This document shows positions 6,687 to 58,084 of a stretch of DNA of 64,000 nucleotides, piece after piece. Positions within the stretch are counted from its first letter, which is position 1; the number at the start of each line of letters is the position of its first letter. This DNA is from Macrostomum lignano (lineage: Eukaryota): the NCBI GenBank assembly GCA_002269645.1, contig NIVC01000036.1, positions 124,001 to 188,000 of the forward strand, read 5' to 3'. The notes under the pieces are model-generated. The model did not search any database and was not told the DNA's origin. It saw only the letters and a program-made list of their open reading frames with translations. Position numbers and translations under genes: made by a program.

Positions 6687-9600
6687 GTAAGACATGTAGT
6701 TAGACTAAATAGCATAAGATGCCAAGTCCCAAACAAGTAGTCTCTTAATCTTTGGTTTCAATAAACATACATGTATTCTATTCGCTTACTAAAACGTTCT
6801 AAAAGTTTCTCACATGTATAAGCGAGACGTGTACAGTCCGCATATTTTATGCTTGCTCTTAAAGTTAATTGATGCCATAAATTTATGGTTGCTATATGAA
6901 AGCTTATAAAACGATCCTAGCCATAGTACGTGTCTGAAAATATGCACATGTATTAACGGTTTCGAATTATAGCCGGCCTGATACTAGACACTGTGTGATA
7001 ACAGGTCAAAGTGTCTTACTTTGAATGTTTTGAATAATTTCGGTTTGGTAGCTCGAATAGATTTTATTCTCCTTTTTGCACTGCCAGTGAGAAAATTCAA
7101 ATTCGGGTCAGAGATATGTTTTTGCTTCAGTGCAGTGTTGGGTATTTTAGTGGTTTACTTAGCTGCATGTGTGCATATTTAAATTGTCTTTGATAACCAA
7201 ACGATAAGGTTCTATTTCCCTTGCTGTATCATGATTAGATTTTCTCAGGAAAAATGTTTAGATTGAGAGCTATGAACTGCTTGAACAACGGTTCGTTCTC
7301 CAATTCGTTGTTTCTTTGTTTTCTAATTTATCTACTTATAGTAGCCCGGTTTGATAACTTCGATCACTATTTTCACCGTGAAATAAGTGTAATGTATGTA
7401 TTGTATAGATGTAGTCTGTAGAATATCGCAAAATCATACATTATTAAAGTAATTCCTGTTAAGGGCATACACATAAAAATGGATTCTTGACCAAATTGAC
7501 GCTAGAACGTAACGGGATTGTCTCGTGAAAGCGTGGTATCATAGGACGCCAATCTATTTAAATTTTTAGTTTTTTAGAAACACTCTTCACTACTGGGCTG
7601 TACTGCCAACACCTGCCGTGCCTGCCCAAGAGAAACTGTTTTGTCTGATGTGCAATTTCCACTCACTTAAATCGAAGCTAGCCCCTAGTGAATTATCATT
7701 TGACGTACCAAATTTGCAAAATATTCATTTGAACTCATACTGAGTCGGAGGTTGGCTAAGCACTATGGAAAATGAATTCACGAACCTTACTTACCCACAC
7801 GGTTATTCGAAGCAGGATGTATGCAACATCAAGAGAGAAATATTCCTATTAGGAAACAGACGCTTAGACACTTCTCTAGAAGTTTTTGAAGAAACAGACC
7901 ACCCATGTGCCTCAAATATGGCTCAAGACTCTCGACGGGTTAGTCAAGAGGAACCTACTCTACTGTAGCTTTGACAACTACCAATGAAAGTAAAGATAAT
8001 GGTTATGGAAGCAAACTGGTGAGTTTAAATCCACAGCATTCGATATTCGATTATAAAACTAAAAAACCCTAATTTTTTATTCTTTATGAAGCAGTTATTT
8101 AAACAATTACTTGTCTTATCTTCAAAAATATTCATTTTTATTAACCATTTAGATATAAACTTATTTTAATATTCCTTAACACAGAAACTGCCTACTAGAA
8201 TAAGTAGTATACTGTTAGAAATAATATATTTGTAGGTTAAAAATTCTGGTAAATAAAATGTTTTTATTATAGTTATATTTCCAACTTTCATTTTCAAGTA
8301 TTACTGTCTTTTAGATAATATCTTTAAATAATGTATTGCCATAAATATGCTCAAATCCCTTTTTTCTGTGTGTTAGAAATTCTGAAGGTTCAGTTTATTT
8401 ATTAAAAATATTACAATTTAACTAAATCATAGACAGCCTTATAAATAGAGCTTTAGTTTATATTAGTATTAATGAAGTAGAAATAATCCTAAAGTTAATA
8501 AAAGACCATTTTCAACTATATCAGTATATTTATAAAGCTAATTCTATCTAAATAATTTTACCTGTGTAGCATAGCATGTAGCATCAGAGTGAGTGATTTA
8601 TATATCAATAGATAAATTAATTTGCTGCCACACAAGAATGCTGGTCAGTTTCTGTGAGCTGCATTTCTATCCATTGTTCCAGTGTCAGCTGAGTAGCCCC
8701 AGCATCAGCCAGGCTGTTGTTTTTATGTGAATCCAACCAGCCATTAGGGGTTAGGCATTAAGCATAACTGTTTGAGTTTGCAAGAAAACTTGCCTGTACA
8801 ATACACCACAATGACACACAAGCTTGCATTGACATTGTAGACCAAATAGTGAAATCGTGTTTTGTTTCTTGCAAAAAATCTGCCTATTGGTACCCTTGAT
8901 TGTCCAGAGAGAGAGAGAGAGAAGCTACTCGCACTGATTGCTAAATATAGAACCCCTAAACCATTGCTCTTGTTTATAACTTAGCTGCGAGCATAATCTG
9001 AAACCTTCTCTTCTTACCCAACTTACCCAAATAATAACCCCGTTTCTCATTTATTTCGCATCCGTTCGCGCTTCTAGCACTGTTGGTCAGAGGCTCAAAT
9101 GTACTACTATTAGCCCTAGCAACTCAAACAGATCTCTCTGGTCAAGCAAATCTGCACGGCAATCTGCTTTAAAAAATGTACTAATAGATTCAGTGCTGCA
9201 GAAATTAGACAGAGAGAGAGAGAGAAAGAAATGGCCAGAAAGGGAATGAAAAGCCAACAAAAACAACAGCCTGTCATTGGTCCACTCGCCCAGACCCCAC
9301 CCCTGACAGAAAGTACAGAGGCTCATGCTCTCTCCCCCCTCTCACTAAACCCGTCCTAGTTCGTCCACTGTGGCTAATTTCTAATTTCTCTCTCCTATTT
9401 CTCTCTACACCTTAATATATATATAAAAAACACTGGAGAAGTCCTCAGGACTCAACGATTTTCAATTATAAAAATCCTATTTGACTTCGTTGGGAAGAGA
9501 ACTCATAACGCGATAGACGTCTTCACTGACGAAACTACGGATCGGGTCTATACATCACTAAGTGTCTTATTCAGCCCTAAACCTGGAGTCCTCAAAAGAG

Positions 9601-9780: not shown

Positions 9781-10065
9781 ATGCAACAGAAGCAGCAGAA
9801 TTGGCGCCGGCGCACCCGCAGTCAGGACGATAGATATTCGTCCACTGACGTGTCGTCAGCCGCTGAAGCTGCTGCCAACGAAGAGCGTCGAAGCACAGTT
9901 GGGAGTATTGGCAACGAGCTGCGGTCTTTGTTCCGCTTTGGCGGCGGCGCTGGTTCGAGTCTTGCTAATCGGTTGGGCGCTTCCTATCGTCGACTGTCTA
10001 AAAGTCGACGAAGCACGCAACGTAGTCAGTCTATCGCCGAGGAGGATGAGTATCACTGCGAGCAG
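9781..10065 (+). CDS. PRKAG: Candidate alternative first coding exon 1c of AMPK gamma (MQQKQQNW...YHCEQ; frame open from 9562)
   Basis: GC-rich open frame 9562-10065 with RxxS-rich sequence, CAG|GTCAGC donor at 10066, phase 0. Confidence 0.6.
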
Positions 10066-37786: not shown

Positions 37787-40700
37787 TCACTGCTCTTTCA
37801 GACCTGAAAGTTGTTTTAAAATGCAATTAGGTCGCTCTTCACTAGCTCAAATTAATGCAGAATGGCGCTCTGCTGAAATTCAACTTGAGCGCCTTCCTGA
37901 CATCCAAATTGACGTCTTCCCGACACCCAAATTGACGTCTTCCTGACACCCAAATTGACGTCTTCCCGACACCCAAATTGACGTCTTCCTGACACCCAAA
38001 TTGACGTCTTCCTGACACCCAAATTGACGTCTTCCCGACACCCAAATTGACGTCTTCCTGACACCCAAATTGACGTCTTCCCGACACCCAAATTGACGTC
38101 TTCCTGACACCCAAATTGACGTCTTCCTGACATCCAAATTGACGTCTTCCCGACACCCAAATTGACGTCTTCCTGACATCCAAATTGACGTCTTCCTGAC
38201 ATCCAAATTGACGTCTTCCTGACACCCAAATTGACGTCTTCCTGACACCCAAATTGACGTCTTCCTGACATCCAAATTGACGTCTTCCTGACACCCAAAT
38301 TGACGTCTTCCCGACACCCAAATTGACATCTTCCCGACAGCCAAATTGACATCTTCCCGACATCCAAATTGACGTCTTCCTGACATACAAATTGGCGTCT
38401 TCCCGACACCCAAATTGACATCTTCCCGACATCCAAATTGACGTCTTCCCGACACCCAAATTGACGTCTTCCTGACACCCAAATTGACGTCTTCCTGACA
38501 TCCAAATTGACGTCTTCCTGACACCCAAATTGACGTCTTCCTGACACCCAAATTGACGTCTTCCTGACACCCAAATTGACGTCTTCCTGACATCCAAGTT
38601 GACGTCTTCCCGACACCCAAATTGACGTCTTCCTGACATCCAAATTGACGTCTTCCTGACACCCAAATTGACGTCTTCCCGACACCCAAATTGACATCTT
38701 CCCGACATCCAAATTGACATCTTCCCGACACCCAAATTTACATCTTCCCGACACCCAAATTGACATCTTCCCGACATCCAAATTGACGTCTTCCCGACAC
38801 CCAAATTGACATCTTCCCGACAGCCAAATTGACATCTTCCCGACATCCAAATTGACGTCTTCCCGACACCCAAATTGACGTCTTCCCGACATCCGAATCG
38901 ACACGCTCCTGTCTCAAAAATTGGTGCGAAAATCTTACCTGTCAGATGTAGAACTCGAGGGTCTGCCTGAAGCACATGTATGCTTATCTGCAAGCGATTA
39001 CAAATGCTTTTAAAGGAAAAATTTTGAGCAGGCTTAAATATCAGGACCAGCTAATTTTACCTTGGGATAGTTGTCTTCGTTAGTCACGAGCTCTAGAAAT
39101 ATCTCGTGCCACTCATCCGGTGTGAGAATGCTCAGCATGTTCAGCTTGCACCAGACTGCCTCGCAGCTGGCCTGCGAATATTGCGTGTTGTGCTGCTGAG
39201 CGCTCAGCACATACAAGCGCGCGACAATACTGTACGCAGGCACGAACTCATGCACACGCTCACACAGGGTGTACAGTGGCCTTTTGACTTTCCAATCGTC
39301 AGGCATGTACACCCTCTGTGCCTTGGAAGTTGGCCCTCATGGCTGTGAATCGCGCGAAAACCCACCGGCCTACCCACAGTGTCAGAAACTGGCAGACAAA
39401 TGACACATAATGACAGATTCGATGACAGCCACTATGACAGACGCTAAGACAGACACTATGAAAGACACTTTGACAGACACTATGACAGACACTATGACAG
39501 ACACTATGACAGACACCATGACAGACGCTAAGACAGACACTATGACAGACACTATGACAGACGCTAAGACAGACACTATGACAGACACTATGACAGACGC
39601 TAAGACAGACACTATGACAGACGCTAAGACAGACACTATGACAGACACCATGACAGACACTATGACAGACACTATGACAGACGCTAAGACAGACACTATG
39701 ACAGACACTATGACAGACGCTAAGACAGACACTATGACAGACACTATGACAGACACTATGACAGACACCATGACAGACACTATGACAGACACTATGACAG
39801 ACACCATGACAGACACTATGACAGACACTATGACAGACACCATGACAGACACTATGACAGACACTATGACAGACACGATGACAGACACTATGACAGACGC
39901 TAAGACAGACACTACGACAGACACTATGACAGACACTATGACAGACACCATGACAGACACTATGACAGACACCATGACAGACACTATGACAGACACTATG
40001 ACAGACACGATGACAGACACTATGACAGACGCTAAGACAGACACTACGACAGACACTATGACAGACACTATGACAGACACTATGACAGACACTAAGACAG
40101 ACGCTAAGACAGACACTATGACAGACGCTAAGACAGACACTAAGACAGACACTATGACAGACGCTATGACAGACACTATGACAGACACTATGACAGACAC
40201 TATGACAGACACTATGACAGACGCTAAGACAGACACTACGACAGACACTATGACAGACACTATGACAGACACTATGACAGACACCATGACAGACACTATG
40301 ACAGACACTATGACAGACACCATGACAGACACTATGACAGACACTATGACAGACACGATGACAGACACTATGACAGACGCTAAGACAGACACTACGACAG
40401 ACACTATGACAGACACTATGACAGACACCATGACAGACACTATGACAGACACCATGACAGACACTATGACAGACACTATGACAGACACGATGACAGACAC
40501 TATGACAGACGCTAAGACAGACACTACGACAGACACTATGACAGACACTATGACAGACACTATGACAGACACTAAGACAGACGCTAAGACAGACACTATG
40601 ACAGACGCTAAGACAGACACTAAGACAGACACTATGACAGACGCTATGACAGACACTATGACAGACACTATGACAGACACTATGACAGACACTATGACAG

Positions 40701-41319
40701 ACGCTAAGACAGACACTACGACAGACACTATGACAGACACTATGACAGACACTATGACAGACGCTAAGACAGACACTATGACAGACACTATGACAGACAC
40801 TATGACAGACACTATGACAGACACTATGACAGACACTATGACAGACACCATGACAGACACTATGACAGACACTATGACAGACACTATGACAGACACTATG
40901 ACAGACATTAAGACAGGCACTGAGACAGAGTCGGAGCTGATTCTATTAGTTTTATGACGGCTAAACCAACGATAGACACTCGAGAGAAGAAATGATTGGA
41001 GAAGATGCATTGCCGCTTGACAATAGACATATATATTACTCCAAGCTTTCGCTCATCAATTGTAAGTTAAACTAAGCTCCTTAAAAATGCGCGCATGGCT
41101 TAAATTTCACAGGTGAACAACTCTTTTTAATAAAAATCGACCAGTTTCGCAGGTTTGTTGCTTTTTGCTCATCTAACCTTTTTTACTAAATACGTGCGCA
41201 ATTGAACCGAAAGAAGAGGCTCAGATAACAGATTTTATAGTGGAATATCATTTTAGAGGTGGTAAGCCCCGAAAAAAGCTTACCTGCTGATTACTGAGTA
41301 CGATGCGTGCTCGGACCAT
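37787..41319 (-). CDS. Putative unknown small protein; exons 41319-41284, 39388 (or 39315)-39061, 38987-38939, 37803-37787
   Basis: Donors CAG|GTAAGC, AAG|GTAAAA, G|GTAAGA; acceptors TGTCTGCCAG, CGCTTGCAG, ACTTTCAG. The protein-like core is [24 protein letters not shown]...NYPK. The longer exon 2 is one base too long for frame. Confidence 0.45.
37897..38895 (+). repeat. 23/24-bp intronic minisatellite (CCCAAATTGACGTCTTCCTGACA)
   Basis: About 42 direct copies. Confidence 0.97.
39408..40915 (+). repeat. 12-bp minisatellite (ATGACAGACACT) with a 480-bp higher-order duplication
   Basis: About 125 units; lines 39781-40260 are identical to 40261-40740. Confidence 0.97.
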
Positions 41320-42544
41320 TCTAACCTGGGGGAGCGCGGCGCGGCTTTATCTACGAGTATCACTCTGTGCGCAAACGGAATAAGCTACAATACATTACGA
41401 TACGCCGTGAGTGTGGTTCACTGGCATACTAGTTAGTTTAGTTCTTCTGCACACTTACAGCAACTTTTACAAGTCACCATGCAGCATTCAAAACCCGTCA
41501 AAATATTCAATGAAATTTGATAACAAAGTAGCAAAATATCAATAACACGATCCCGATATATTTCTTGTCCATCATAAGCCGGACAGACCATCTCGGGACT
41601 CAAATCGCGCGATGCATTTTTTGAGATGTTCGGTTTTTAAAAGCAAATTCTGGGCCTTTCGGAGTTTTACTGTTAGTAATATAATTTTCATCCCAGTTTT
41701 GACTTAACACCTATAACCAAAAGCTCTTCAAAAGGCTATGTCAGTTTGATGTCAGTTCAGGACTCCAACCGAAATGAAAGACAGCAGACTAATTAGTTTA
41801 ATGAGGCGCAACACCTCCGCAGTAGGTGAGATTGACCCCGATAGAAGCGGGAGGAGGCACAACTCTCGCCAGTAGAACGGCAGGTAAACATCCTGATAAG
41901 CCCGCAGTACGATGGACAATTAAGAAAATTTTGAAGTCGATCCTTCTGGGACAGTTCCGTAGCCACCCTTCTGGGAAACCCGGTCGAGCCCCAGCGACGC
42001 CTCGTGTTGGCGCTCGGCCCGACCTGAAGAAGCAAACGACATTTCAATGGCTCACTACATAAAAAACGTTGGAACAAGCGCTGTTCTAGAGCTATAAGCT
42101 ATTTTCCTGACATTAATTCGTGGATTGAGTTTTCTTGCTAGAGAAGCGTGACACGGGCTGTAATCGATCAGTTTCAGATGATTCACTACATACACAGTAA
42201 GAATGAATTAGTGATTTATACAATTGCAAGACAGCGCCAGCAAATGAAGTTCTTTTAACAAAAAATCAATACGTATAAGTATAGTTTTGAATAATAAAAC
42301 ACGTATATTATAATGAATGAATTTGATATAAAATTTTTATATTTCTAAGAGGTCTCTCTTTAAAGAGAATGCTGTGAAAGATGGATCACTGACAATTTGT
42401 GACACTTCAGTCTACCTTGCGGTGAAATTGTTAGTTGGTACAAAAAGCTACAATCTAAAACAAAATAGCTAGCTCATTAAAATTGAAAACATCATAAGAG
42501 ACACATTACCAACATTCTTGCGCTACACAAACAAGCAAGGAATT

Positions 42545-44518
42545 TCACACAGGTACAGTTGTGTGGGTTTGTTCTAATAGCACTGTAGTATGATTGCCAC
42601 CGGCGCAGCTCGTGCCAGCGCAGATGTAACGGTTCTGATAGATTCGAAACAGCACAGCAACAGTCAGGAGCAGCAGCAGAAGCAGCCAAGTTAGACAGCG
42701 ACGAGCCAGCACTGGTCGCAGTGGCGGCAGCGAGTCCTGCTGCTCGATGCTCACTTCGGATTCGCTCTCGTACGGTGTGTCGTAGATCTGTGACGCGTGC
42801 CGAATCCGTTTCGGACGAATCTCGGGTAGCAACGGAGTTATTTCATTAGCGCCGCCTGGCGAAGCGGCTGCAAGAAGTTTGGCCGATGAATCTGACCCTG
42901 CGACTCGGTGCTGAGCATCGCTGACTTCCTTCTCCCAATTGGTGCGCAGGACAATCACCCAGAATACGAGGGTTTCACCGGCAAGACCGATCAGCAAACC
43001 GATCCAGAAGCCGCGAATCTCCATCGAAGTGAGCAGACTCAACGGAATGCCGATAGGCATGGCCACTGCACAGTACGCAATGAGATTGACCACTGCACCA
43101 ATAAACTGCCTACCGCTGCCCTTCAGCACACCTGAAGCAGTCGCTGAGAGTCCGTCAACGTAGGGAAACGGAGCGTATATGGTCAGCAGATCAGAGGCGG
43201 CGTCTCTCACTACCGGGTCGCTGGTGAACAGGCTGGCAATGTAGAAGTGACACGTAGAGAAAAAGAGGCAGATAATTGTTGACATTGTGAGAATCATTGT
43301 CACAGCTACTTTGTAGGTGTGTTTAGCCTTCTCAATCTGCTTAGCTCCAATGTGCTGACCAACCCGGATGTTCACAGCTATGGACATCCCCAGCGAGACC
43401 ATGTAGGACAGGACGGAAGCTTGGAATACGATGCCCTGAGCTGCCAGCTGAAGAGTGCTGATGCCGCCGGCAATGAAGGTACCGATCTGAGGAAAGGATA
43501 AAAGAACACAATGTGCGACAAAAACCCTCTTAGCTGTCTCTGTCAATCGGGTACATTTATTTACGCAAAGTAGATGTTCAATGTGATATGGGAGTGAGCG
43601 CGTTTAAAACGGAAAAAGACAACCGTAAAATTTTATTTCCCCTCAAATTCATTGTGATATTAAATATCTAATTCAAAAAGCATCAGCTGTGCTTACCTGG
43701 AAGCATAATTCCTCCATCGCTACGAGCAGAAGGCCTGGCACAGCCAGCCGGACGAATCCGCCGATGTCGTACAGAGCTTCAATCGTCCAGCCGTCCCACG
43801 TGTCCTCATAGACGCCCGACACTCGAATGTACGCGATTATACAGGCGCACATCACGAACAGCGACGCTGCCTGACACGCTGCGGACGCCTCGTACTGAAA
43901 GCCCAGCACGTAGATTGCGATGTACTGAGACACTGCGTTGAACACGTTCCCGATGAAGGCGCAGATCAGAGGCGGGTACACTCGGTTCTGAGTCTGCAGG
44001 TACCGAGCCAGCACCAGAAACGTGTAGTCAAAGAACACGCCCGGCATGAAGATCAGGATGTATTGCGATGTCATGTCACTGACTACTGGGTCCTGACCCA
44101 ACAGAAGCAGCAACGGCTTGATGTTCAGGTTCAAGCAGTACACAGGGATCAGGAACATGTACATGACAATGAGACTGCGCTGCAGATAGAGACCGACTCT
44201 CTTCCTGTAGGCGCTGCCGTAGGTCTGAGCGAAGTACGTGTCGCATGCGGTGGACAGGCCAAGACCGATACTCAGGCCCGCAACGCTGATGAGCGTGCAG
44301 GCGAGAGCGGCCGCGTCCAGCTGTTCCTTGGACAGGTGGCCGCACATGATCACGCTGATGGTCTGCAAGAAGATCTGGAAGAAGCACGTGAGGAACGACG
44401 GCAAGTGCAGCTTGCCGATCTCGCGGAACTCCTTCCAGTATCCGAGCGGGAAAAACCGCTCGCCGAAGCGTCTCGGGAGTTGCTTCACGTTTTGCTGAAC
44501 TGTTGCCTTCTTTGTCAT
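42545..44518 (-). CDS. SLC47A: MATE family (SLC47) transporter; exons 44537/ATG 44518-43697 and 43486-42545; 587 aa from own ATG
   Basis: Motifs GLSTACDTYFAQTYG, RVGLYLQRS, RYLQTQ, TWDGWT, RLAVPG, IRVGQHIGA, GVLKGSGRQFIGAVVN, GFWIGL, LRTNWEKE and a C-terminal extra TM; 210-bp phase-0 GT-AG intron. Confidence 0.93.
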
Positions 44519-44688
44519 TCGAAATGGGATTTTTAACCTGTGGAGAGAACAAATTTCATTGAAATTGATTGAAATTTGCTGCAAAAATGAGGAGCACAGT
44601 ATTTTGTTAAGTTTTATAACCAGTTTACCAGCTAAATATGCCATCAACGGTCTGTATTTTATCCAACTTACATGTAGAAAACTCCATC

Positions 44689-45315
44689 AAGACTGCAGAT
44701 TTTGAGCATCAAGACTGTAGATTTTGAGCATCAAGACTGCAGATTTTGAGCATCAAGACTGCAGATTTTGAGCATCAAGACTGCAGATTTTGAGCATCAA
44801 GACTGTAGATTTTGAGCATCAAGACTGCAGATTTTGAGCATCAAGACTGTAGATTTTGAGCACCAAGACTGCAGATTTTGAGCATCAAGACTGTAGATTT
44901 TGAGCATCAAGACTGCAGATTTTGAGCATCAAGACTGCAGATTTTGAGCATCAAGACTGTAGATTTTGAGCATCAAGACTGCAGATTTTGAGCATCAAGA
45001 CTGCAGATTTTGAGTAGCAAGACTGCAGATTTTGAGCATCAAGACTGTAGATTTTGAGCTTCAAGACTGTAGATTTTGAGCATCAAGACTGCAGATTTTG
45101 AGCATCAAGACTGTAGATGTTGAGCATCAAGACTGCAGATTTTGAGTAGCAAGACTGCAGATTTTGAGCATCAAGACTGTAGATTTTGAGTAGCAAGACT
45201 GCAGATTTTGAGCATCAAGACTGTAGATGTTGAGCATCAAGACTGTAGATTTTGATTAGCAAGACTGCAGATTTTGATTAGCAAGACTGCAGATTTTGAG
45301 CATCTGCGGTAGATT
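44689..45315 (+). repeat. 22-bp intronic minisatellite (GCATCAAGACTGCAGATTTTGA)
   Basis: About 28 direct copies. Confidence 0.96.
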
Positions 45316-45401
45316 TTGAAATCACGAATCTATATATATATATATATATATCGATTGGATCTAATCAGACTCAAAATGAAGACGCTGAACTCAAAACTCA
45401 C

Positions 45402-45748
45402 CTAAAGGTGAACACGGACACTACAATACTGATAACCAGCAGCTGCAGCATCAGCACAGCGTACACCCTGGTGATGAAGCCACGTCGCATGGCGGGATCA
45501 GAGAAGCTGGGCCCAGCCTCAAAACCGCCGCCGACACCTCCGCCACCTTCAATGATGGCCACGGCGTCGTGACCTTCAGGACGAGAGTGGGCGTAGCCCC
45601 CGCCAGCGGTGGCAGGCGGCTGACTGGAGTCGCCAGTGGCCACAGGTGCGTACTGCACCGACGGGTAGGCCGGCTTCACCGCGTCTGTGTAGCTGGGCAG
45701 CTGCCGCTGCTGCCCTGCCTGCTGCTCCGCTGTTTGGTCTTGCTTCTC
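45402..45748 (-). CDS. Lifeguard/TMBIM-like exon (N-terminal tail + TM1), probably preceded by a 12-codon exon at 48036-48001
   Basis: FSDPAMRRGFITRVYAVLMLQLL matches the TMBIM RRGFIRKVY signature; acceptor CTATCTTCCAG, donor AG|GTGAGT (phase 2). Confidence 0.8.
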
Positions 45749-45814
45749 CTGGAAGATAGATTTTTTTCTCTGGAGGACTTATAATTCAAACAATATTGTC
45801 TACACAGCAAGGCT

Positions 45815-46610
45815 AGGGATCTGGGAGGCTGACCCAGCAACTGAGGATCTGGGAGGCTGGCCCAGCAACTGAGGATCTGGGAGGCTGACCCAGCAGATGA
45901 GGATCTGGGAGGCTGACCAAGCAACTAAGAATATCGGAGGCTGGCCCAGCAACTGACACTCTGGGAGGCTGACCCAGCAGATGAGGATTTGGGAGGCTGG
46001 CCCAGAAGATGAGGATCTGGGAGGCTGGCCCAGCAACTGAGGATCTGGGAGGCTGGCCCAGCAACTGAGGATCTGGGAGGCTGGCCCAGCAACTGAGGAT
46101 CTGGGAGGCTGACCCAGCAGATGAGGATCTGGGAGGCTGGCCCAGCAACTGAGGATCCGGGAGGCTGGCCCAGCAACTCAGGATCTGGGAGGCTGGCCCA
46201 GCAACTGAGGATCTGGGAGGCTGGCTCAGCAACTCAGGATCTGGGAGGCTGGCCCAGAAACTGGGGATCTGGGAGGCTGGCCCAGCAACTGAGGATCGGG
46301 AGGCTGGCTCAGCAACTCAGGATCTGGGAGGCTGGCCCAGAAACTGGGGATCTGGGAGGCTGGCCCAGCAACTGAGGATCCGGGAGGCTGGCCCAGCAAC
46401 TCAGGATCTGGGAGGCTGGCCCAGCAACTGAGGATCCGGGAGGCTGGCTCAGCAACTCAGGATCTGGGAGGCTGGCCCAGAAACTGGGGATCTGGGAGGC
46501 TGGCCCAGCAACTGAGGATCTGGGAGGCTGGCCCAGCAACTGAGGATCTGGGAGGCTGGCCCAGCAGCTGAGGATCTGGGAGGCTGGCCCGGCAACTGAG
46601 GATCTGGGAA
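45815..46610 (+). repeat. 28-bp GC-rich minisatellite (GAGGATCTGGGAGGCTGGCCCAGCAACT)
   Basis: About 28 direct copies. Confidence 0.96.
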
Positions 46611-46759
46611 AATTTAAATGCGCATCAGACTACTTTTAGTAGCGTAGAGCTAAGAGCCCCCCCCCGAGAATAACTTTTTGTTTGCAGTCGAAAGAAGATT
46701 AAAAGCATCAAATTGACGATAAATTTATACATGTAAATATTTGCGCTTTTAGAAAAAAG

Positions 46760-47466
46760 TAGGGAGAGGGGAGAGGGTAGAGAGGAGAGAGGCTAGAGAG
46801 GATATTGGGTAGAGAGGATATAGGGTAGAGAGGAGAGAGGGTAGAGAGGATATAGGGTAGAGAGGATATAGGGTAGAGAGGAGAGAGGGTAGAGAGGATA
46901 TAGGGTAGAGAGGATATAGGGTAGAGAGGAGAGAGGGTAGAGAGGATATAGGGTAGAGAGGATATAGGGTAGAGAGGAGAGAGGGTAGAGAGGATATAGG
47001 GTAGAGAGGATATAGGGTAAAGATCGGATATAGGGTAAAGAGGATATAGGGTAGAAAGGAGAGAGGGTAGAGAGGATATAGGGTAGAGAGGAGAGAGGGT
47101 AGAGAGGATATAGGGTAGAGAGGATATAGGGTAGAGAGGATATAGGGTAGAGAGGAGAGAGGGTAGAGAGGATATAGGGTAGAGAGGATATAGGGTAAAG
47201 ATCGGATATAGGGTAAAGAGGATATAGGGTAGAAAGGAGAGAGGGTAGAGAGGATATAGGGTAGAGAGGAGAGAGGGTAGAGAGGATATAGGGTAGAGAG
47301 GATATAGGGTAGAGAGGATATAGGGTAGAGAGGAGAGAGGGTAGAGAGGAGAGGGGAGAGAAGAGACACAAACCTTGGGCGGGCCGGGCCGGATTGCTAT
47401 TGTGAAGATTCAAAGGACCCGAGGGCCGGAGAGAGAGGCTTGACGGGCCGGACTTGCCGACCCCTG
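46760..47466. repeat. 16-bp purine-rich array ending in a hAT-MITE-like terminus
   Basis: GGGTAGAGAGGATATA units, followed by GGGCCGGACTTGCCGACCCCTG; a related left-end-like fragment lies at 34268-34510. Confidence 0.7.
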
Positions 47467-48974
47467 CTTTAACCAAAGGATTGGTTAAAAGTGGAGCAAT
47501 GCTAGGGGGGATTGAGTGAAAACTGTCTTAGTTTTTTGCTTTTTGGGTTTGTTGAAAATTTGAAATTCGGAAATTTGAGGTAGCTTAAAGCCACCTTAGT
47601 GAATTTTGGGGGGGGGGTTTACTAGGCCGAAACTTCACATTGCCGAGTATGCTCTTCCATAAGGTTCGGCCTAGTGAAAGAGTGCTTTTGGGCAAAGTGA
47701 AATTTTTGCCTAATGAAAGCGCCCCGTGAATTTGGTGCGGTTGTTTTTTATGGAGTTTAATATTTGTACGTTTGTAACTCACACTGCAATGTGATTGTGA
47801 AAGTATGTATTGCTAAAAATACCAACCCTTTCGTTTCAGATGACACACTAATCTCGAAGTATAGATAGTTACAAGCAGATACAGTTGTTCATTGTAGTAA
47901 ATGTAAGACAGGACAAGTATGCAAAACAGATTGGGCGTCGTTGTTGAAAGGCTAAACTTTGTAATTAAAATGTAAAAAATATAGTAACTGTAACATTCAC
48001 CTGTAACAGGTATACCCCTGTACTTTCAGGGATCATCGACGTTAGTTATTGATGACTACAACGGCATTTATGACGTAGCAAATTCGAGATGTAGTTAGCG
48101 ATTAATTAATTATTAGTTATTTATTTTATAAGTTATTTATTTATTAGTTAGCAGTTGGCAGTTGGCAATTGGCGACAATGAACTAGCCGGTTCAGACAAT
48201 GAATAGATGAAGTCAATGGTTTATCGAATCGAAGAACTGACGACTGGATAGGCGGCCAATTGTAAATTATGTCCCGGTGGGACCGCCAAAAATATATGAC
48301 GTAGCAAATTCGAGATGTAGTTAGCGATTAATTAATTATTAGTTATTTATTTATTAGCTGTTTATTTATTAGTTAGCTAGTTCAATTATTAGTAGTGTTG
48401 ACACGCAGAGTACGAGACAAAATGCCGAGTTTAGGAGAGTATACAAAAACGAGCGCGAGGCAACAATTTAAATTGGCGGGGAAATCCGATTCATTTAAAC
48501 CTAAGATGTCTATCAAAAAAGTAATAACTTGGATTTAAATAAATAAAACTTAAAGTACATTTTTTCTAAATAAATTACATTAAATTAAGATGCTAACGAC
48601 GTCGTCACACATTGGTACGATAGAGAGGCCAATATATAGAATCCGAGACTCTAAAAATGCGAACTGATCGGACACAAATAACACCTTAATAAGAAATGTT
48701 AGTAAAATTTATTGCTTAATAAGCTATATATATACACGATTGGCTATTATAGGACCAAACATCTTGGACAGCTAATAATAAAATACGTTTTTAACAAGAT
48801 CAATTCACAGTCTGTAGAACGATGCGGGACTGTATATTATAATGATACAACATAAAGAAGTTTATGTTTTTTGTTTGTTTCTCTTTCTCTCTAATCATTT
48901 TTAAGTCCATCATCTATTGGGCGCAATCTCGTCGCTAAAAATGTTAACTTTATCGAACATGCACTTGTAATCTC

Positions 48975-49892
48975 CTACTGACGACTGAAGCCAAGCAGTA
49001 TGAGAAAGATGTAGACAACATCCACGTAGATCTGCATAGCTCCGTAGACGTACTCCTCCTCGGATAGATCGTGCCTACGACTGCCGACAACGCGCTGGGT
49101 GTCGAAGATGAGGAACAGCACGAACAGCAACGCCAGCAGGCCGCCATAGACGCAGTCAAGAATCTTGGCGGTCATTGAGAAATTCGGATCGCCCCTGTAC
49201 ACAAAGAAGGTGACCAAGCAGGACAGTCCGAACAGGAACACCACCAGGCTAAAACCGAACAGCAAGCCGCTGCACATGGTGAAGTCGTAGCGAGTCTGCA
49301 CAGCGAACAGGGTGACGCCAAGGCACACGGCGGCGGTGACGCCAAGGCACACGGCCACCGTGTTAGTCTGATAGCACGAAGCAATAACTCCAGTCATGAA
49401 GGACAAGCTAGCCGTGAAGATGGCCAAAGAAATAAAATTTCCAGGAAATCTACGACGCAGCGGTGTAATGCAGACCAGAGCAAAGTACATGATAATAAAG
49501 ATTCCATAGGACACGTGGAACAGCCACAGATTGGATCTGGCAAATTGTTTCACAGGTTTCACAGCCGAGAAAATGATCACAACAGTGAAGGTGACCAACA
49601 GTTGGGCAAACAGTATCAGATAGACTTTGCGGATGAAGCCGCGCCGGATCTCTTTATTGTCGAGGCCGCGGATAGCGAATTCGCCAACTTCATTGGTGGC
49701 GCCAGATTCCACATCACCGGCAGATCCAGGCTGGTTACTAAAGCCTTCATTTTTTATGCCTCCTGTGCCCGAGCCCTGAGCCTGAGCAGAGCCAGCCTTT
49801 TGCGGACAGTCAGTGTAAGCTTCTGCCGGATATGGAGGCGGCTGCACCTTAACTTCATTAGGATAATTTTTCAAAGGCTGATCAGCAGACAT
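48975..49892 (-). CDS. TMBIM: Protein lifeguard (TMBIM/FAIM2/GRINA-like), intronless CDS, 305 aa
   Basis: Complete Bax-inhibitor-1 family domain (IRRGFIRKVY, RRRFPGNF, QTRYDFT, FDTQ, EEYVYGAMQIYVD) and an N-terminal PPPY; upstream acceptor at 49946-49948. Confidence 0.95.
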   Translation of the reverse strand: MSADQPLKNYPNEVKVQPPPYPAEAYTDCPQKAGSAQAQGSGTGGIKNEGFSNQPGSAGDVESGATNEVGEFAIRGLDNKEIRRGFIRKVYLILFAQLLVTFTVVIIFSAVKPVKQFARSNLWLFHVSYGIFIIMYFALVCITPLRRRFPGNFISLAIFTASLSFMTGVIASCYQTNTVAVCLGVTAAVCLGVTLFAVQTRYDFTMCSGLLFGFSLVVFLFGLSCLVTFFVYRGDPNFSMTAKILDCVYGGLLALLFVLFLIFDTQRVVGSRRHDLSEEEYVYGAMQIYVDVVYIFLILLGFSRQ

Positions 49893-55267: not shown

Positions 55268-58084
55268 TCAGATTTGATCGATGACCCACGTGTCGTTTCC
55301 AGTTTGTCCGTTGACTTCCACGTGGTAGGACAGCGGCCCAGTCTGCTTCAACACTTTGGCTTGAGCCCACTTGTTTTCTTTTTCCCTCCTGAAATCAAGA
55401 GCTAGCACTATATCTCCAGCCTGAAACTCTCGGTGAGGAATATGTTCCCGGCGCATCATCTGCTTATTTTGCGAATCCAGGACTCTCCCGTATGTGTCTG
55501 GCTTCGGGAAGTCCTTGTGCGCCTTACATACGCAAGCATTATCTCGGCAGGTGACTTGCCCGTTGTGCTATGAGGCGTGCTTCTATAGCGGAATAGGAAA
55601 TTGTGCAGGCCCAGCATGGCATCATCGTGCCTCTTCATGCCTGCTCTGATCGCATTCTTGGCTGTTTGAACCATTCGCTCACTGAGCCCGTTGGTTCTTG
55701 GATGTCCCACAGCACTGAAGATGTGATGGATGTTATTTCGCTTGGTGAATTCAGCAAACTCCTGTGATGCAAACTGGCTTCCATTGTCGGTCAGTATCTG
55801 TCGAGGTATTCCAAACCGAGCAAAGTCTCTCGAAAGCGTTGAATGGTGTTCGCGGCACTGGCAACTTTCATTGGAAAAACCTCTACCCATTTTGATGTGG
55901 CATCCACGATTACCAACCAATTGAATCCGAAACACGGTCCGAAAAATCTGCCTGAAGTCTCGTCCATGGCTTTTCTGGCCAACTCAACGGGTGAACAGCA
56001 GATTCTGGTGGTTTGCTTCGCTGCAGTTCGCATCCCTTGCATTGTTTCACAGCTCTTTCAATCTGTTGGTCGATTCCCGGAGACCAAACGTGCAGGCGAG
56101 CGATCGATTTCATCGATACAATCCCAAGCTGTCCTTCGTGCAGCAGGTTCAAAACTTGGTGTTGGAGGCTAGATGGAATGATGGCGCGTATAACCCAGAA
56201 GATGACTCCCTGCTCAAGACAGAGTTCGTTTCCTTTCTGACGGTATATCTCAAGCTCAAATTCACATTTCTCCGGCCAACCGTTCTGGCAGAACCTGATT
56301 ACCTTGCTCAGAATAGGATCCCTGGCTGTCTCTCGACGAATCTCGACAGCGGTGATAGGCAGTTCTTGAAGTCGACGTTCCATGACTTTGTCCACTCGGG
56401 GCGTCGAACTTGGCAATGGCAACCTGGATAACGCATCAGCGTTGCCGTGGTCCTCTGTCTTTCGAAATCTTATCTCGTACTGATGAGCAGAGAGCAAGAC
56501 TGCCCAACGTTGCAATCTGCTAGCTGCGATGCTCGGGATGTCCTTCTTTTTTCCGAAAGTAGTAATTTGAGGCTTATGGTCTGTTACCAAAATAAACTTG
56601 TTCCCGAATAGATACTGATGGAACTTCTTGATCCCGAATATGATTGATAGCGCTTCTTTTTCCAACTGAGAATAATTCTGCTCCGCTGGTGACAGTGTCC
56701 TTGATGCGTAACTGATAGGCAGTTCAGCACCACCTGGCATTGTGTGGGACAGAACACATCCGAGCCCATACTTCGAAGCATCAGTGTGTAGGATGATCGG
56801 CTTCTTTGGGTCGAAATGCACCAGCAGCCGGTCCGATATCAGAATTGACTTCACAGAGTAAGCAGCTTGGCACTGACTGCTCCAGCTGAATGTCACATCG
56901 TTTCTCAGGAGTCGGTTGAGTGGCGCCAGAACAGTTGATGAGTTGGGTATGAATTTCCCATAGTAGTTAATAAGTCCAACCAAGGATCGAACCTCGGACA
57001 CACTGGTAGGATTCGGTGCGTTTCGCACAGCAATTACCTTGTCAGGAGATGGGTGCAGTCCGTCATTATTGATAATATGACCCATGAATTCTACTTTTTG
57101 CAGCCGAAACTTGCACTTGTCCTTGTTGAGTCTGACACCCCTGTATTGCAGTGTCTTCAACACTTCATGCAGTTTCTGATCGTGTTCCTTGAGTGACCTT
57201 CCCGATATTAGAATATCATCGATGTAAGCAACAACTTCCAGTCCACAGAGAATTTTCTCAATCGCTTCTTGGAACTGAGCAGGAGCAGAAGCCAAGCCCA
57301 TTGTTAGTCGATTGTACTGGTACAATCCCAAGTGTGTATTGATGCTCGTAAATTTTCTGCTGCTTTCTTCCAACTCCAGCTGCAGAAAAGCTTGAGAAAT
57401 GTCCAGCTTGGAAAAGTACTTCCCACCATTCAAAGTAGCAAACATTTCCTCCTGTCGAGGTAGTGGATACTTGTCCACTTCCAGCTGTGGATTAATAGTC
57501 CTCTTGAAGTCCGCGCAGATCCTGATTGATTTCCCATCTTTCTTCAGCACTGGCACAATGGGAGAAGCACAATTTGATGAACTCAGCTTTGATATGATCC
57601 CTTCGTTGACAAGGTTATTGAAGCTTCTTCATTGCAAACGGTACAGGTCTGCTCTTGTGAAACTTCGGACAGTAATCCTCACGAACAATGATTCTTGCTT
57701 TCGCGTTGTTAATGAGTCCGAGTCCAGACGAAAACACCTCCGGGTAACCTCAAAGATGGATTTTGGTGAAAAGGTGCTTCCAATTTCAGCCACGTGGACA
57801 ACCTTCTGCCAATCCAGCTTGATATTCAGCCAGTCCCTTCCTAGCAAATTCGATCCGTTGCCCTTAACCACCAAAACTTTCAGCTTATGCTGCAGTCCTC
57901 CATGAGTGACTTCGACTAGAGCTTCACCGAGCGTCGGAATTGCATGGTTCGAGTAAATAAACAGTCGCGTTGACGTCTTGCTCAGCTCCAACCCAATATC
58001 CTTGTAGCAATGCTCGTTGATTAGCGTTCTGTCGGCTCGTGTATCGATGCTGAACTCAACATTTGTACCTTGCAGCTTGATCAC
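55268..58084 (-). pseudogene. pol: Gypsy Pol split across several frames (protease, RT, RNase H, integrase, GPY/F)
   Basis: IDTRAD (degenerate DTG), LDISQAF and YIDD, TDASKYGLG, NADALSR, VDATSKW/TDNGSQF/GLSERMV, GPLSY; at least four frame changes. Confidence 0.9.

Follow-up and report, generated by a model that had tools for sequence, protein, structure and literature searches.

We report here a gene of the flatworm Macrostomum lignano in which the first coding exon of a Lifeguard gene, LfgB, is joined in frame to the body of a MATE transporter gene. It lies on the minus strand of contig NIVC01000036.1 (assembly GCA_002269645.1), in a 64-kb stretch of DNA that was analyzed at its full length and is referred to here as the window; positions are those of the whole window unless another locus is named. 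We consider it likely, with a probability of about 0.72, that this is a genuine and expressed young chimeric gene of M. lignano with the origin and structure set out below. Both parents are identifiable, the breakpoint is mapped to 44686|44685, and the two introns that were joined are both of phase 2, as in exon shuffling. The window was compared with two loci of the arrangement LfgA-LfgB-KANSL2 (L003 and L004) and three of the arrangement PDZ-CLAMP-MATE-MATE (L002, L005 and L006).

Structure of the fused gene

The Lifeguard part of the gene is a single coding exon (45402..45748) that encodes a Pro/Gly-rich disordered tail with an LPSY motif, the sequence RRGFITRVY and the first Lifeguard transmembrane segment (TM1, residues 96-114 of a 710-aa product), and that ends in the phase 2 donor TTTAG|GTGAGT. 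It is preceded by a polypyrimidine tract and the acceptor cTTCCAG| (45749..45775), which is the proposed site of spliced leader (SL) trans-splicing. The intron that follows is itself composite. Its 5' part (44686..45401) is LfgB intron 1 and contains a (TA)n run and a 22-bp satellite with the unit CTCAAAATCTGCAGTCTTGATG, present in about 28 copies between 45304 and 44685 according to Tandem Repeats Finder (TRF), and its 3' part (44538..44685) is the last 148 bp of MATE intron 1, ending in the acceptor ttctctccacag|. The two parts meet at the rearrangement breakpoint (44685..44686), where the satellite passes into MATE intron 1 (...CAGTCTTGAT|GGAGTT...) with about 1 nt (G) of microhomology.

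At 44537 the acceptor ttctctccacag|G opens the MATE frame in phase 2, and the chimeric junction reads ...VSVFTF-R-LKIPFRM.... The MATE exon entered in this way (43697..44537) encodes a basic cytosolic linker, the N-lobe, the start of TM7 and an MEELCFQ motif, and contains an internal ATG at 44518. It is followed by an intron (GTAAGC...CCTCAG, 43487..43696) that has the same position in L002, L005 and L006, and by the last MATE exon (42545..43486), which encodes the C-lobe, a long loop, a 13th transmembrane segment and a short tail with an NHT sequon, and ends with the stop codon TGA at 42547-42545. Neither a stop codon nor a frameshift interrupts the 2130 coding nucleotides.

A preliminary description of this DNA, made from its letters, had proposed a Lifeguard-like exon at 45748-45402 with a phase 2 donor, an acceptor at 44537 that enters the MATE frame in the same phase, and an in-frame gene to which Lifeguard contributes an LPSY tail and TM1. 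These proposals are borne out: the minus-strand reading gives TTTAG|GTGAGT and ctctccacag|G at the two splice sites, the tail and TM1 are both encoded by the LfgB-derived exon, and the exact junction recurs in an RNA-derived GenBank model and in two models of the ML2 assembly. The further statement that no other Lifeguard exons lie downstream also holds, as intact LfgB matches only LfgA and exon 1 across the window. In tblastn and blastn searches with intact LfgB, exons 2 onward had no match in the entire 64 kb, and no coding sequence for Lifeguard TM2-7 is present there; MATE exon 1 likewise has no match anywhere in the 64 kb. The idea of a MATE gene nested inside a long Lifeguard intron was rejected, the window holding no further Lifeguard exons, only LfgA and exon 1.

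Transcript support and database entries

The GenBank coding sequence at 45718..42545 (PAA92974.1, Mlig026869.g1, BOX15_Mlig026869g1) is 5'-partial and encodes 699 residues, corresponding to 317+841+942 nt minus the stop, a length produced only by the 45402|44537 splice. The annotation of the genome was built from RNA evidence alone, using StringTie/TACO on STAR alignments, a de novo transcriptome, TBONE – that is, peaks of SL and poly(A) reads – and TransDecoder (PMC5730564). Because an RNA-only annotation yields the matching coding sequence, the 45402|44537 junction has transcript support, and the RNA-derived gene models thus indicate, indirectly, that a chimeric transcript exists.

The preliminary description had suggested searching for proteins that join a TMBIM N-terminus to MATE. 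Such proteins are found: two UniProt models from the ML2 assembly, A0A1I8HQ88 (394 aa) and A0A1I8HLX9 (215 aa), carry the VSVFTF-R-LKIPFRM junction. The search with the chimera also recovered a UniProt Lifeguard model with a near-identical N-terminus and four 649-aa non-chimeric MATE proteins. When the 115-aa Lifeguard exon was the sole query, a word-based homology search returned nothing, and the identity of this exon came only from the whole-chimera search and the search with LfgB.

The entries for the chimera are labeled 'hypothetical protein' in GenBank and either MATE or, in one UniProt model, 'GDT1 family protein', and a full-text literature search with the identifier Mlig026869 found no paper. 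The gene is therefore present in the databases yet, as far as we have seen, unrecognized as a fusion; the database names mislead, and the entries deserve to be flagged as a Lifeguard::MATE fusion. A separate entry, UniProt A0A1I8GI27 (P0030, 519 aa, 'Protein lifeguard 1' of ML2), is a read-through merge of LfgA and LfgB with two full Bax1-I domains; it is a database artefact and distinct from the real Lfg::MATE fusion.

Parental loci and the origin of the junction

Intact LfgB lies with LfgA and KANSL2 (-Erf4) at L003 and L004 and encodes the proteins PAA67687.1 and PAA77473.1, and at L002, L005 and L006 an intact MATE gene, which still has a 56-aa exon 1 of its own, accompanies PDZ and CLAMP. 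The LfgB-derived exon of the window is 97.98% and 97.7% identical in nucleotide sequence, ungapped, to exon 1 of intact LfgB at L003 and L004, respectively. At L003 this exon also ends in TTTAG|GTGAGT, its intron has the same (TA)n run and 22-bp satellite, and the next LfgB exon begins C|GAGTCGGTG, giving ...VFTF-S-ESVKKW. On the other side, exon 1 of MATE at L002 consists of an ATG and then 56 soluble residues, with the donor GA|GTAAGT, and intron 1 carries a different, 31-bp satellite; the acceptor ctccacag|GTTAAAAATCCC, which is common to the chimera, gives ...NPTTE|LKIPFRM in phase 2. Compared with the parental copies at L002, L005 and L006, the last 148 bp of MATE intron 1 are 94.6-94.8% identical, the MATE exon 43697..44537 is 97.0-97.1% identical and the last MATE exon 97.6-98.1% identical at the nucleotide level.

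The window is collinear with L003 and L004 from at least 53068 down to the end of the satellite at 44686/44685, and collinearity with all three MATE loci starts exactly at 44685 (L002 11634, L005 12515 and L006 11060). The 22-bp unit is present in 28 copies in the window, 19 in L003, 18 in L004 and none in the three MATE loci.

The preliminary description had derived the Lifeguard part from a partial duplicate of the neighboring Lifeguard gene. That neighbor is LfgA, which is only 48% identical to the exon at the amino acid level, over 31 residues that cover the motif and TM1 (tblastn, E=3e-4), as against the 97.7-98.0% nucleotide identity of LfgB. Judged by these identities, the donor is LfgB, which comes second in a conserved tandem with LfgA, in the form of a homeologous copy that has been truncated.

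We propose that, in one of several genome copies that are homeologous or duplicated, LfgB intron 1 was broken within its 22-bp satellite and that the broken end was joined to MATE intron 1, 148 bp before its acceptor, at about 1 nt of microhomology. This join would have eliminated LfgB exons 2 onward as well as the first exon of MATE, leaving the native LfgB donor at 45402 to splice in frame to the native MATE acceptor at 44537. The fusion is in frame because LfgB intron 1 and MATE intron 1 are both of phase 2. A simple local deletion or tandem duplication between adjacent loci was rejected as the source of the join, since the 10-kb flanks of the Lfg-type and MATE-type loci have no sequence in common; this holds within those 10 kb.

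The junction borders on a 620-bp satellite, in a redundant assembly of a genome more than half of which is repeats (PMC5730564), and the Mlig_3_7 and ML2 assemblies that both contain it rest on the same PacBio data. These circumstances speak for an artefact of assembly in which a Lifeguard and a MATE locus were wrongly connected within repeats. The satellite, however, is on one side of the junction only, and the corresponding sequence is unique in three MATE loci; with the satellite missing from all of these there is no shared repeat to cause a collapse, and a mis-join brought about by such a collapse was rejected. Both flanks are moreover 2-6% divergent from every other copy found, so that the window represents a diverged copy in its own right and was not pieced together from L002 and L003. 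A precise in-frame intron is present in the RNA-only annotation, and two further and slightly different ML2 models share the junction; a mis-join is unlikely, given two UniProt models with an identical junction. The substitutions in these models are nested: S201, L205, S206 and A214 occur in all chimeras, P138 in the window and A0A1I8HQ88, and T125 and A128 in the window only, from which it follows that the fusion is older than the split between the chimeric copies or alleles, of which there are at least two or three. Taken together, an artefact of assembly seems to us extremely improbable.

The 5' end of the transcript and the start codon

There is no ATG in the first 87 codons of the LfgB-derived exon. 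The 35-nt SL of M. lignano, CGGTCTCTTACTGCGAAGACTCAATTTATTGCATG, ends in ATG and is added at acceptors of the form [T/C]TNCAG (PMC8629364), which the acceptor at 45749|45748 (TTCCAG|GAGAAG) fits. With the SL joined at 45748, its terminal ATG is in frame and opens a 710-codon open reading frame (ORF), and the first 520 nt contain four ATGs, each of them in frame. Three independent models (P0157, P0155 and P0156, which are PAA77473.1 and the two ML2 chimeras) begin at the very first codon of the exon, as expected after trimming of the SL. The AUG of a flatworm SL serves as a translation initiator, according to Cheng et al. 2006 as cited in PMC9851317. Most likely, then, the start codon of the chimera comes from the spliced leader at 45749|45748, giving a protein of 710 aa; trans-splicing at this site would make the 5' end of the mRNA, and the AUG of the leader would start translation. 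A point on the other side is that the annotated GenBank transcript begins 30 nt inside the exon, and for that reason we infer the use of the SL at this locus. At L004 (~9995-10000) the acceptor of the first LfgB exon is TTCCTG|GAG, not TTCCAG|GAG, and PAA77473.1 still starts at the first codon of the exon; multi-mapping SL reads that belong to the other copy may have fixed this boundary, or the L004 copy may be splice-defective.

A different start had been put forward in the preliminary description, namely a cis-spliced 12-codon exon (48001..48036) at the head of a four-exon gene of 2166 nt and 721 aa. The lengths are right (36+347+841+942 = 2166 nt) and the frame is open for 721 codons and a stop; it is the first exon that is unsupported as a part of the gene. 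This exon does have an ATG, which is kept in L003 and L004, an open frame and a phase 0 GT, and it leaves the total in frame. Its donor, GTGAAT, deviates from the GT[G/A]AG consensus, however, and the homologous stretch shared with L003 and L004 extends only to 48013, short of the donor, those loci reaching a stop without a phase 0 donor. The exon is also at the level of chance, in that the same 3.2-kb interval contains five equally good candidates, or 23 if any GT is accepted as the donor, and it appears in no gene model, three of which start at the first base of the next exon. We find it scarcely credible that the 12-codon exon supplies the start.

Another upstream cis exon ('...SKM|GT'), taken from A0A1I8FNY9 (P0033), was rejected, being the antisense of a transposon that is found in L003 only and is absent from the window. 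This element (L003 6788-8124, with reverse-strand ORFs at 6936-7583 and 7513-7971) is a frameshifted Tc1/mariner/IS630-like transposon with DDE_3 and HTH_23 domains that sits between LfgA and LfgB in that copy alone, and its antisense strand accounts for the false N-terminus of A0A1I8FNY9, which ends in ...RRKM.

The MATE protein might alternatively be made without its Lifeguard part, by leaky scanning to 44518 or from a separate or SL-bearing mRNA that begins at 44537. The methionine at 44518 is conserved in all copies, and scanning to it is unblocked, as the stretch from the 5' end to 44518 has no ATG in another frame; the Lifeguard exon shows no detectable constraint, and an extra N-terminal transmembrane segment is, to our knowledge, unprecedented for MATE. 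Three in-frame ATGs precede 44518, though, one of them (CCCGCCATGC) in strong context, and 44518 is not the native start, given that translation of the parental genes begins 56 codons upstream, in exon 1. The preliminary description had offered SL trans-splicing at 44537 as a real alternative. An SL joined there has its ATG out of frame and opens a 154-codon ORF that overlaps the MATE start, on which ground we discarded productive trans-splicing at this site, and the acceptor CCACAG lacks the T of [T/C]TNCAG. In the RNA-derived model, as in each of the ML2 models, the two parts are joined. Synthesis of MATE alone is accordingly very unlikely in our judgment.

The predicted protein and its topology

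The 710-aa product is predicted to consist of the disordered Lifeguard tail, a helix that we call TM0 (the former Lifeguard TM1), a strongly basic linker of 47 residues, a 12-TM MATE core and a 13th TM. Pfam finds MatE in two stretches (E=1.2e-52), and phmmer aligns residues 150-680 with residues 31-566 of human MATE1 (hMATE1, PDB 9r10) at E=2.7e-91, the last exon aligning to the C-terminal helix of hMATE1. E273 and E389 are proton-site residues of hMATE1 (PMC5696359), and this acidic pair is kept, with E at the position of Glu273, which is Glu265 in AtDTX14, and D (...PYVDGLSAT...) at that of Glu389, which is Asp383 in AtDTX14. Around the position of E278 the human protein reads M-E273-W-W-A-Y-E278 and the window M-E-E-L-C-F-Q. 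N82 and E278 are among the ligand-contacting residues of the cavity (PMC11423340). Measured by its domains the product is thus a MATE protein, and from its sequence it departs from the family at two conserved cavity residues.

The first 115 residues are identical to LfgB at 110 of 115 positions (96%). Pfam finds no Bax1-I domain in the chimera, and intact LfgB has one at residues 86-295.

No other segment of the protein is as hydrophobic as TM0 (residues 96-114). The N-terminal flank of this helix has a net charge of +2 and its C-terminal flank one of +5, and the linker contains 12 K/R as against 3 D/E. The orientation of such a segment is governed by the positive-inside and charge-difference rules, and the N-terminus of MATE proteins is normally cytosolic. 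We therefore expect that the basic linker would stay in the cytosol, that TM0 would insert with its N-terminus out and that the MATE core would keep its native orientation; the acidic, disordered tail of 95 residues, LPSY included, would end up outside the cytosol. With TM0 inserted N-out, the LPSY tail would be beyond the reach of Nedd4-type ligases, whose control of the transporter the preliminary description had considered. Retargeting to the Golgi or lysosome, which it had likewise considered, is speculative, and the exon in question changes at roughly the neutral rate. The NHT sequon in the C-terminal tail after TM13 is consistent with an external C-terminus. The preliminary description had cautioned that the added helix would invert the topology of MATE, which is probably not the case, the charge counts favoring N-out insertion of TM0 and a native core. 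Codons 45430-45425 (TM0 residues 106-107) have changed from ACC GGT (TG) to ATC AGT (IS), which makes the partner-less helix more hydrophobic, and this change could be adaptive or a matter of chance.

Selection on the two halves

Estimates of the ratio of non-synonymous to synonymous substitution rates (dN/dS) were obtained by the method of Nei and Gojobori. Among the three parental copies of the MATE part dN/dS is 0.02-0.12 (dS 0.023-0.045), and LfgA of the window has a value of 0.13-0.19 against L003 and L004. Between L003 and L004 themselves the LfgB exon has no non-synonymous and one synonymous change. In the MATE part of the fusion, 35 of 1783 coding positions carry window-specific substitutions, compared with 35 of 752 in the adjacent non-coding sequence (Fisher p=3e-4), so that the coding rate is 0.42 of the non-coding rate. 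Indels that distinguish the window from the other copies number none in the coding sequence and eight in the 752 nt of non-coding sequence; the probability of finding none is 6e-9, or 8e-5 if only half of the indels fall on the window branch. By these counts the MATE half appears to be under purifying selection, relaxed or shifted.

A series of observations weighs against a functional fusion protein. In comparisons of the window with the parental copies, dN/dS rises to 0.31-0.42 in the MATE part (dS 0.046-0.058), and the LfgB exon, compared with L003 and L004, gives 0.6-0.9, with five non-synonymous and two to three synonymous changes. The substitution rate of this exon equals that of its flanks (7/347 as against 3/170), and the exon thus appears to evolve about neutrally, without detectable constraint. 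The constraint measured on the MATE half may, in part, be older than the fusion. Among the 22 amino acid differences in the MATE part, three lie at positions invariant in all outgroups: N201S, E397Q and Y536C, which correspond to N82, E278 and Y417 of hMATE1 in the alignment to PDB 9r10. S201 and Q397 are found in the window and in the chimeric model P0156, and N and E in 3/3 parental copies and 10/10 outgroup MATEs. The loss of invariant residues could reflect decay instead of new function. Lastly, AlphaFold gives TM0 a predicted local distance difference test (pLDDT) score of only ~52-54, with the helix undocked on the core, and the tail one of 30-40; the MATE core scores above 90, the core and TM13 together 86-98 and helix 652-687 86-95. 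Since the score of TM0 is low, AlphaFold neither supports nor contradicts the proposed topology.

These observations raise the question of whether the locus, real and transcribed as it is, is a decaying by-product of post-polyploidy genome reduction that makes no useful protein and is turning into a pseudogene, after one rearrangement had cut short two redundant copies, a Lifeguard and a MATE. Favoring this are an omega 3-10 fold above that of the parental copies in both halves, the loss of N82, E278 and Y417, a Lifeguard exon that changes at the non-coding rate, and the redundancy provided by two intact copies of LfgB and at least three of MATE. In addition the second MATE gene, beside the fusion, carries a 1.8-kb internal deletion, which suggests that this haplotype is losing genes. 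Decay is opposed by the 2130 nt without stop or frameshift next to flanking non-coding sequence with its eight indels, by the reduced coding rate, by the persistence of the fusion while at least two or three chimeric copies diverged and by its representation in the RNA-only annotation. We regard mere decay as possible, but unlikely, and prefer a young chimeric gene that appears to be still constrained in its MATE half. In such a gene the main role of the Lifeguard exon may be that of a 5' exon, trans-splice acceptor and upstream regulatory DNA for a MATE copy that lacks its first exon.

Neighboring genes and repeats

Upstream of the fusion lies LfgA (48975..49892, minus strand), the tandem partner of LfgB, which is intact and intronless and encodes 305 aa with a full Bax1-I domain (Pfam E=7.5e-29). 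About 6 kb further upstream is a Ty3/gypsy-type pol ORF with RVT_1, RT_RNaseH and Integrase_H2C2 domains (55456-58084, minus strand).

Downstream is a remnant of MATE-2, the second gene of the MATE tandem (41827..42153, minus strand), in which the first exon (42042-41932, MSFASSGRAERQ...) is joined to the 3' end of the same gene. About 1.8 kb of coding sequence is gone by comparison with L002, L005 and L006, the window positions 42151|41915 corresponding to L002 14160...16831, and the alignment thus places a second gene-disrupting deletion on this haplotype, beside the fusion. At the parental loci the first large exon of MATE-2 (L002 15158-15915, L005 16040-16798 and L006 14591-15349) is 96.3-96.8% identical to MATE-1 of the window (44467-43709), and the last exons of the two genes are 84.4-84.5% identical, a pattern suggestive of gene conversion within the MATE tandem, affecting the N-lobe exon.

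The window contains further satellite arrays, with units of 23 bp (37881-38902, 44 copies), 12 bp (39410-40929, 127 copies), 28 bp (45817-46609, 28 copies) and 16 bp (46774-47350, 36 copies). The 12-bp satellite, ATGACAGACACT, produces long spurious ORFs on both strands, and the 12-, 23- and 28-bp arrays are common to the parental loci at 86-92% identity.

Discussion

The event described here corresponds to exon shuffling by way of introns, with a young and fast-evolving chimeric gene as its outcome. With both parents intact and a breakpoint placed to the base, it is a useful natural experiment; the addition of an odd number of helices to a transporter of fixed topology is a test of how far topology tolerates exon shuffling, and the proposed start illustrates how SL trans-splicing can make fusions viable, by supplying a cap, a 5' end and even an AUG. 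It also provides an example of rearrangement at the level of genes, affecting redundant copies, in a species that is both a recent polyploid and a transgenic model organism.

A bolder proposal treats the fusion as an innovation with a function of its own: a MATE of 14 helices, with a start at the SL AUG, in which TM0 either acts as an N-out signal anchor that displays the Lifeguard tail in the lumen or outside the cell, or redirects the protein to another membrane, while E278Q and N82S shift substrate or ion coupling. We hold this to be speculative and rather doubtful. If true, exon shuffling that respects topology would here be caught in the act, with two polytopic membrane proteins as its partners.

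The chimera resembles SLC47 and other eukaryotic MATE proteins (hMATE1, 9r10; AtDTX14, 5Y50) in having two MatE repeats and a 13th C-terminal helix of the animal type. It differs from SLC47 MATEs in Q at Glu278 and S at Asn82, which are changed in chimeric copies only, and from the parental MATE in an extra transmembrane segment and a foreign tail of 95 residues that replace a soluble N-terminus of 56 aa. With M. lignano LfgB (PAA67687.1 and PAA77473.1) it shares the tail with LPSY, RRGFITRVY, TM1, the splice donor, the upstream acceptor and the upstream DNA; compared with Lifeguard/TMBIM proteins (PF01027), it keeps approximately the first 30 of 207 Bax1-I positions and is without TM2-TM7, which comprise the channel and the pH sensor, and for want of these helices it cannot work as a TMBIM channel. 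Like flatworm slORFs, which are ORFs that start at the AUG closing the 3' end of the leader, it has an SL acceptor consensus at its first exon, needs no upstream cis donor and has the SL ATG in frame, although its SL start is a prediction and the GenBank model is 5'-partial.

Young chimeric genes reportedly include Drosophila jingwei and chimeras formed by tandem duplication in D. yakuba. The gene described here shares with such genes parents that are intact elsewhere, breakpoints in introns of equal phase, a 5' exon that was taken, along with regulatory DNA, from one gene and placed on the body of another, and accelerated amino acid evolution after the fusion. Unlike retroposed chimeras, it originated in a recent polyploid, on one of the redundant copies, and unlike these examples it probably takes its start codon not from the gene itself but from the spliced leader, and it joins two polytopic membrane proteins with the addition of an odd number of transmembrane segments.

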